Positions 36,390-37,727 of a stretch of DNA of 64,000 nt are shown here, piece after piece (position 1 is the first letter of the stretch; each line of letters starts with the position of its first letter). Source of the DNA: Selaginella moellendorffii (lineage: Eukaryota > Plantae > Lycopodiophyta); the NCBI RefSeq assembly GCF_000143415.4, contig NW_003314287.1, positions 332,203 through 396,202 of the forward strand. Reading direction: 5' to 3'. Position numbers and translations under genes: made by a program. Under the pieces are notes generated by a model. That model was not told the DNA's origin, searched no databases, and saw nothing but the letters and a program-made list of their open reading frames with translations.

Positions 36390-37727
36390 ACCTCTTCTTG
36401 CATGAGAATTCTGTAAGTCGATGGTTGGCACTCTCGTAGTATTCTTGCAGGCGTTTCTGAAGTTCAAGGAGGATGTTTTTAAGAAGCTGCATGAGCCGGC
36501 GTGCAGACAATCACCCAGTTCTCTAGGACATTCTAGTTCAAACTGTGTGGGCAAACATTAGCACTAATATAAGCCACAAAATTGGGGAGTAGTCATAGTC
36601 TCCGTTACCTTCTAACCTTAGCACGCAATAATCTCCTGCAGCAGGGAGTGTGCTTCATCTGATTCCAATGGATTATTCACGAGCTGACGGGCCAACTGAA
36701 CACAAGAACTGAGCGAATTTTAGAACTGCAGAGCAAAACTAACCTGAATGAAGCTCTGAAGAGTCTCCCGGGACACACTATCAGGCCACTGAAAGTTCCC
36801 CACGAGTTTACCATGCGAGCCAACTGTTTCAAGGAGGAAGGCACACAAGAAGCAAGGTAGCTTGCTAATGCCGCGGACGATATATTCAGGAGGGAGCTGC
36901 AAAGATAATCAAGATTAAACAAGCAAGTTCGAATTGTTAACTCACCTTCTGTTCACAGTGAACAGATCCATTGTATGTGACGTAATCACTTTGCTCGAGG
37001 CCTCCATATTTTTTCGTCAGCCTGAAAAAAGCTGAGTATTTCTGTATGCATGCATTAAAACAAACATACCTTCTCTTTAATTCTTCAGCAGCAACAGGCT
37101 CTGGCGGTGGCAAAAGCTCCAGGAGCTTCAGAGGATGAAGTGCAACCACTTTTGTTCTAGAAAGCTCATCCCGTACGATGCTTTGGCGATAAGCACAACC
37201 TCTGAACTCAGCTCTCAGGTACTGTGCTCATTCATAGAAGACAGCGAGCAACTCCAAAGAGTGAGACATGGTAACTCTTTCCTGGATGCAACGTTTAGCC
37301 AGAGCAGCACCATCACTTGCAATCTCCATGGCAGTCCTGCCACCAGCAACCGAAATATCTGCTTTTTTTGCCAGTTCTCGAATGATTCCTGTGTTGGCAT
37401 CGCAAATATCCTGACGGAGCTGTGCAATGCTGACTGTTTCATCGCTGATCTTCTTGAGCAGATCACCAGATTTCTGTGTCATTGCATCATTCCAGGCATG
37501 GTTGCGAGCAATTGACAAAACTGTCAAATACAGAAAATGATTCAGAAGACAAAGAGAAGACAAATCCAGAGCTTACCTTCTTCCTCGTTGCCCGATTGCA
37601 ACGCAACGCAATCATGCCGAGAACAAGCCAGCACCAATGCCAGAACACTGAACGAAAGTGATTCCACATGATCATTTTGTTTTCTAGCTTCAAAACATAC
37701 CATTTGCTCTTCATCGTAGTCCTCCAT
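36390..37727 (-). pseudogene. OTT_1508-like nucleic-acid/nucleotide deaminase (zinc-dependent CDA fold), multi-exon, with premature stops
   Basis: Exons 37727-37577, 37520-37070, 37021-36946 and 36896-36609 with GT-AG introns; LALVLACSRHDCVAL..VLSIARN N-terminal motif; GSVHCEQK|LPPEYIVRGISKLPCFLC..VGSHGKLVGNFQWP; in-frame TGA at 37230-37228 and TAA at 36722-36720. Confidence 0.78.

Follow-up and report, generated by a model that had tools for sequence, protein, structure and literature searches.

A premature stop codon in one haplotype of a Selaginella moellendorffii gene for a predicted OTT_1508-like zinc deaminase

The window, by which we mean the entire 64,000-nucleotide stretch of Selaginella moellendorffii DNA that was analysed, carries on its minus strand (37714..36618) a six-exon gene for an OTT_1508-type deaminase. 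We conclude that the window very probably holds the premature-stop haplotype (LOC9637718) of a single-locus gene whose other reference allele, LOC9628887 or SELMODRAFT_427619 (EFJ10029.1, XP_002989000.1, D8T068; scaffold GL377657.1, hereafter L001), encodes an uninterrupted OTT_1508-like zinc deaminase. A first-pass annotation made from the DNA sequence had described the clade as known mainly from fungi and bacterial endosymbionts. The family assignment is already known, however, as SELMODRAFT_427619 was placed in the OTT_1508 clade in 2011 as one of its 'strongly divergent' and sporadically distributed eukaryotic members, with S. moellendorffii included in the phyletic range of the clade (Iyer, Zhang, Rogozin, and Aravind, 2011; PMC3239186), and the null allele adds only a minor point to that assignment. 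New here are the natural null allele itself, RNA support for the gene structure, a third haplotype, and the finding that the readable allele is missing N-terminal residues in its public model.

Contigs of one DNA run (X1) and of three probable RNA runs from two studies (X4, X5, and X9) were aligned to positions 35000-39500 of the window. In the resulting gene model, five introns interrupt the coding region, each 48-56 nt long (48-66 nt when the 3'UTR intron is included), all with GT..AG ends, and every feature described in this and the following paragraph lies on the minus strand. The first exon (37701..37734) has an approximate 5' end, where an X5 RNA contig reaches 37734 and adapter begins, and it contains the start codon (ATG 37714-37712) at which the NCBI model of LOC9637718 begins (MKSK|C). 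The first-pass annotation had started the protein at an upstream ATG, 37727, and had missed the 53-nt intron at 37648..37700 (GTATGT..TTCAG), which RNA contigs of X4, X5, and X9 remove with a joint at 37647/37701. After removal of this intron, ATG 37727 opens only a 20-codon frame (MEDYDEEQM-CSGIGAGLFSA-stop), and an 11-base deletion in L001 eliminates this ATG altogether. Starting at 37714 (MKSK|C-VLALVLACS...) keeps the conserved N-terminal stretch VLALVLACSRHDCVAL...VLSIARN that the first-pass annotation had cited. The second exon (37577..37647) encodes VLALVLACSRHDCVALQSGNEEE, as judged from its translation, the LOC9637718 model, and exon-by-exon tblastn, and probably carries the N-terminal strands of the deaminase core. 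A 56-nt intron (37521..37576; joint 37520/37577 in X4 and X9) separates it from a large exon (37070..37520), whose translation reads VLSIARN followed by about 135 residues before HCE and holds the in-frame TGA of this haplotype (37228..37230), which is present in the genome and retained, with the reference letters, in RNA contigs of X4 and X9.

The next intron (37022..37069; 48 nt, joint 37020/37069 with the cut at +1 in X4 and X9) is free of stop codons if retained, and an open reading frame at 36937..37149 runs through it. The translation of the exon that follows (36946..37021) ends ...NGSVHCEQK, and its HCE (H 36960-36958, E 36954-36952) is predicted to supply the histidine ligand and the catalytic glutamate. 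Between HCE and PCxxC lies a 49-nt intron (36897..36945, GTGAGT...GCAG) with its joint at 36896/36946, which is skipped in contigs of all three RNA runs from both studies. This part of the first-pass intron model therefore stood, and the peptides that it had quoted from the two sides of the intron are exact translations. Exon 4, as we call the exon at 36744..36896, reads LPPEYIVRGISKLPCFLCAFLLETVGSHGKLVGNFQWP... and contains GISK (36872-36861), PCFLC (36857-36843), and GSHGK...FQWP, which extends to 36783. The 48-nt intron beyond it (36696..36743, GTTAGT..TTCAG) was placed from its splice ends and from the SELMODRAFT_427619 allele, which joins FIQ|LARQ; it is also implied by a 263-nt X5 contig that covers exon 4 exactly and leaves 87 letters, as many as the next exon has, although the recorded joints do not include this one. 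The last coding exon (36609..36695) contains the TAA terminator (36620-36618) and is longer by 12 bases, or four residues, in the other haplotypes. The 3'UTR continues, after a 66-nt intron (36543..36608; joint 36542/36609 in X5), through 36419..36542, with an approximate end given by X4 and X5 RNA contigs. Splicing 3' of the stop codon is alternative, as this intron is spliced in one X5 contig and retained in another X5 contig and in an X4 contig.

Taken together, the RNA contigs skip 37648-37700, 37521-37576, 37022-37069, 36897-36945, and the 3'UTR intron 36543-36608, and none of these RNA-supported introns is skipped in the DNA run X1. The deaminase gene is transcribed and spliced; being assembled contigs, the RNA data drop rare variants and give no allele ratios or expression levels. 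When each exon was searched against the window by tblastn, no second copy of the gene was found. With its five coding introns, its occurrence on two reference haplotypes and a third, and its transcription and splicing, this gene is native to S. moellendorffii.

Several results support membership of the encoded protein in the OTT_1508 clade, as the first-pass annotation had proposed from its motifs. First, exon 4 alone (51 residues) matched Pfam PF14441 (OTT_1508_deam) with 30.3 bits and E=4.2e-7 over profile positions 24-64 of 64, which argues that the deaminase motif is not a chance match. The window allele was scanned exon by exon, and the public allele SELMODRAFT_427619 was used instead for the scan of the whole domain, which gave 27.1 bits over profile positions 1-64 of 64, with the HCE motif within the span. 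Both scores fall just above the PF14441 gathering cut-off of 27 bits. Second, the clade signatures listed in Table 1 of Iyer et al., 2011 (PMC3239186), consisting of GxxK before CxxC, an extended loop with a polar residue that is usually histidine, and an aromatic-xx-P element, are present in addition to the general HxE and PCxxC motifs (HCE 36960-36952, PCFLC 36857-36843). GxxK occurs in the window allele as GISK-LP-CFLC, and the loop with its histidine and aromatic-xx-P occurs as GSHGKLVGN-FQWP, its positions being read from the sequence alone. Third, none of the exons matched any other Pfam family at E<=10, including DYW, TadA, CDA/dCMP, and APOBEC, in agreement with the earlier exclusion of the DYW, TadA/ADAT, and CDA families, and at E<=1 SELMODRAFT_427619 matched only PF14441, apart from a sub-threshold match to ORC3_N.

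Further comparisons gave less. The language-model neighbours nearest to SELMODRAFT_427619 are fungal PF14441 proteins (score 0.93, 198 shared features); these neighbours and the stretch of about 135 residues from VLSIARN to HCE are leads, not tests. A single-sequence AlphaFold2 model of SELMODRAFT_427619, in which the first 41 residues are absent, had low confidence (mean pLDDT 39, pTM 0.26), and it is this low-confidence model only that predicts exon 37070..37520 to be helical. A sequence search of the PDB returned no relative, and searches with PADLOC and NCBIfam returned nothing meaningful.

The closeness of the Pfam scores to the cut-off, together with the fungal nearest look-alikes of both the deaminase gene and a Crinkler-like neighbour described below, might be taken to mean that the HxE/PCxxC motifs arose by chance and the product is not a deaminase, or that the DNA is foreign, through contamination by a fungus or bacterium or through very recent transfer. 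Against both versions, a piece of only 51 residues reaches E=4e-7 with all of the clade-specific signatures present, the introns are of Selaginella size and are spliced in plant RNA runs, the gene sits in collinear plant sequence on two haplotypes with a PPR gene, retrotransposon pieces, and a highly expressed plant gene around it, and collections of phages and plasmids held no match. A chance match or foreign origin is thus largely refuted, and we rate it as very improbable.

The assignment of the window gene and SELMODRAFT_427619 to one locus is based upon synteny. L001 is collinear with window positions 41701-36366 at 97.9% identity, additional syntenic blocks occur on both flanks, and the S. 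moellendorffii assembly is reported to contain both haplotypes as near-identical gene pairs with the same neighbours (PMC3095285); we therefore take the L001 copy to be an allele of the window gene. At 37230-37228, the window has TGA, the single in-frame stop in its reading frame and, as the first-pass translation had indicated, one that lies upstream of the active site, whereas L001 has TCA (Ser). At 36872, GGC in the window corresponds to AGC in L001, which exchanges glycine for serine in GxxK (GISK versus SISK); at 37506, CGC corresponds to TGC, which exchanges arginine for cysteine in IARN; and at 37594, in exon 37577..37647, TCG corresponds to TTG, which exchanges serine for leucine. One synonymous difference (37631) and the 12-nt indel in the last exon, where L001 has the four extra residues, complete the set of four non-synonymous differences, one synonymous difference, and one indel in the coding exons. 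The DNA run X1 represents a third haplotype. It also has TCA at the stop position (C>G on the plus strand at 37229), carries the window letters at 36872, 37506, 37594, and 37631, so that TCA is combined with GISK, and has the 12-base insertion in the last exon as well as an 11-base deletion within the 49-nt intron. Two of the three haplotypes are therefore readable, both with serine at the position of the stop, and the earlier suggestion of allele-specific inactivation is borne out. The same annotation had thought CpG decay of CGA a plausible source of the stop and had advised a search for CGA at 37230-37228 in other haplotypes, but L001 and X1 both have TCA there. Most simply, the TGA is a change on the lineage of the window haplotype, and its readable counterpart is TCA rather than CGA.

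Translation of the TGA haplotype gives only 125 residues and stops about 75 codons short of the HCE...PCxxC centre. The exons downstream of the TGA contain no ATG in frame, and this haplotype therefore cannot make the catalytic domain. The NCBI product of LOC9637718, which was found by a word search of proteins with the first part of exon 37070..37520, is 125 aa in length, equals the window exons, and ends at the TGA, so the locus is annotated without a deaminase domain. In this sense the domain is hidden, as had been claimed, with the annotated product halting upstream of it. The reading frame through the catalytic domain is interrupted in the window allele and uninterrupted in SELMODRAFT_427619, although the public model of the latter starts at an internal methionine and omits 41 N-terminal residues, in which the first two strands are expected. 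Zinc ligands and glutamate are intact in every haplotype seen.

When the OTT_1508-like deaminases were described in 2011, they were known from computational prediction only (PMC3239186). Since 2025, fungal OLD proteins have been recognised as enzymes that edit mRNA from A to I and thereby turn on antiviral defence, and upon virus infection they fix premature UAG codons in adjacent zao transcription-factor genes (PMC12754623; PMC13327615), with a preference for U at -1 and for a hairpin loop (PMC12754623). They are the only experimentally tested members of the OTT_1508 family found in the literature searched. Because fungal enzymes of this family correct premature stops through editing (PMC12754623), and because the TGA transcript is the form found in RNA contigs though it is an expected target of nonsense-mediated decay, we considered whether the window allele could be functional through bypass of its stop, by read-through, by selenocysteine, or by A-to-I conversion of UGA to UGG. 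In the window, however, the adenosine of the stop is preceded by G, whereas OLD enzymes favour U at -1 (PMC12754623). In addition, the TGA is unedited in the X4 and X9 contigs, although rare variants are lost in contigs, the local RNA does not fold more stably than its shuffles (z = -0.18), and the other haplotypes have serine, not tryptophan, at this codon. The UGA-G context is not known to be leaky. Function of the window allele by stop bypass is thus extremely unlikely. A narrower proposal, in which the UGA itself would serve as a hairpin editing site, was rejected on the fold comparison with shuffles and the unedited RNA contigs.

A more serious alternative to a null allele beside readable ones is that the whole gene is decaying, with all haplotypes being relics of an old OTT_1508-type acquisition that are transcribed but unselected, and with the TGA as the first obvious lesion. 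Differences between the window and L001 are about as dense in the coding exons as in introns and UTRs, which suggests that constraint may be weak, and a ratio of non-synonymous to synonymous differences of 4:1 with an in-frame indel points in the same direction. The readable reference allele also lacks the glycine of GxxK, RNA contig depth is low, and protein searches found no relatives. By contrast, the zinc ligands and glutamate are kept in all haplotypes seen, every splice site is kept and used, and the third haplotype pairs TCA with GISK; five single-nucleotide differences, moreover, are too few for a selection test. We regard decay of the whole gene as unlikely, while giving it real weight, and prefer the reading in which the window carries a null allele of a gene that is uninterrupted on other haplotypes.

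An exhaustive search of 1.84 billion representative proteins with exon 4 found one true relative, SELMODRAFT_427619 (243 aa, 98% identical over this exon), the copy of this gene on the other haplotype, with about 98% identity across the locus; it is unlike the window allele in having Ser for TGA, SISK for GISK, Cys for Arg, Leu for Ser, and four more residues. Two further matches in that search were false and of low complexity. Word-index protein searches with the first part of exon 37070..37520, with full-length SELMODRAFT_427619, and with its domain part returned only the two S. moellendorffii alleles, and tblastn of SELMODRAFT_427619 against phages and plasmids returned no match, so homologues outside S. 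moellendorffii were found in none of the protein, phage, and plasmid searches. Apart from Iyer et al., 2011, no paper in the literature searched names SELMODRAFT_427619. As a separate observation, a fraction of 0.16 of the words sampled from the gene region 36400-38000 was present in a run from a second organism (X14), which may reflect a relative in another species.

Neurospora crassa OLD-1 and OLD-2, which belong to the OLD-ZAO antiviral module, share with the Selaginella protein the Pfam domain and the HxE...CxxC centre, and the fungal PF14441 neighbours of SELMODRAFT_427619 are of similar protein size. In the fungal OLD proteins, as in the Selaginella protein, many residues separate the N-terminal strands from the HxE helix, a place at which fungal OTT_1508 versions have a helical insert (Iyer et al., 2011; PMC3239186). 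However, no pairwise sequence similarity to OLD-1 or OLD-2 is detectable, A-to-I activity has been shown for the fungal OLD enzymes only, and no ZAO-like zinc-finger partner is seen beside the Selaginella gene, where the L001 flanks have no Pfam match on record and the window has a PPR open reading frame, retrotransposon pieces, and Crinkler-like open reading frames. The founding member of the clade, OTT_1508 of Orientia tsutsugamushi, has the core motifs in common with the Selaginella protein, but the bacterial versions form the C-terminal toxin part of proteins that are secreted or injected, and immunity genes often accompany them, whereas the Selaginella protein is stand-alone and intracellular, with an intron-bearing gene and no detected signal or delivery domain. 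[quoted passage not shown] Unlike members of the APOBEC, DYW, dCMP/CMP, and TadA families, the Selaginella gene matches none of their profiles at E<=10, and it has no PPR repeats.

The readable alleles would encode a protein of about 290 aa, in which the histidine and two cysteines would hold a zinc ion and the glutamate would act as a proton shuttle in deaminating a base in nucleic acid. The most likely role would be in a conflict or defence system, where the protein would edit or mutate RNA from viruses, mobile elements, or a host regulator. We propose such a role because fungal OLD proteins carry out A-to-I editing of mRNA and because Iyer et al. suggested that eukaryotic members, with their sporadic distribution, defend against viruses or selfish elements (PMC3239186). 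The target base may be cytosine, which rather than adenine is the predicted substrate of the clade (Iyer et al., 2011; PMC3239186), or adenosine, the target of the fungal enzymes. The coexistence of readable and null alleles fits a defence-type gene that is dispensable or carries a cost. A stronger version, in which the readable alleles are active OLD-type RNA editors of the nucleus or cytoplasm, directed against viruses or transposons, and null and active alleles are both kept because the activity is costly, seems to us improbable. If true, it would make the readable product the first land-plant enzyme of this kind and would place an OLD-type editor in a variable island beside Crinkler-like NTPase genes with fungal nearest look-alikes. 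The Selaginella gene is the only land-plant member that we found, either in the 2011 table or in the present searches, and a null allele beside a readable one in the reference genome offers a ready genetic contrast for asking if a plant makes use of this enzyme family at all.

The surroundings of the gene provided several additional observations. A plus-strand gene at 37765-38900, with seven GT..AG introns of 46-50 nt and very high RNA contig depth, lies head-to-head with the deaminase gene. The gap between the two is about 30-50 bp, and the shared promoter contains 2.5 copies of CCCTAA (37744-37760), resembling a telo-box. The allelic head-to-head products in L001 (251 and 118 aa) have no Pfam match on record.

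About 1.3 kb beyond the 3' end of the deaminase gene is a 513-aa open reading frame (32825-34363, plus strand) with no Pfam match, whose nearest language-model clusters are fungal hypothetical proteins (Basidiomycota, Mucoromycota), some with PF20147 (Crinkler). Two 'fungal-looking' genes of conflict type, the deaminase gene and this Crinkler-like open reading frame, are thus adjacent. A related copy of the latter lies around 16490-18350 in the window, and the other haplotype has one copy, at L001:16629-18811, whose orientation with respect to the deaminase gene is reversed. Haplotypes differ structurally in this region: window positions 41701-46195 (about 4.5 kb) are absent from the collinear position in L001 (5800-5827), and parts of them are found elsewhere, at L001:11208-14110. 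Retrotransposon pieces (RVT_1, aspartyl protease, Tf2-1 SH3) and a PPR-repeat open reading frame occupy 21872-29677 (minus strand) and 39799-40560 (plus strand). Finally, positions 35300-35900 have high RNA and DNA coverage, numerous variant letters, one 8-base insertion, and loose ends, and this segment resembles an expressed repeat situated at the 3' end of the Crinkler-like gene.
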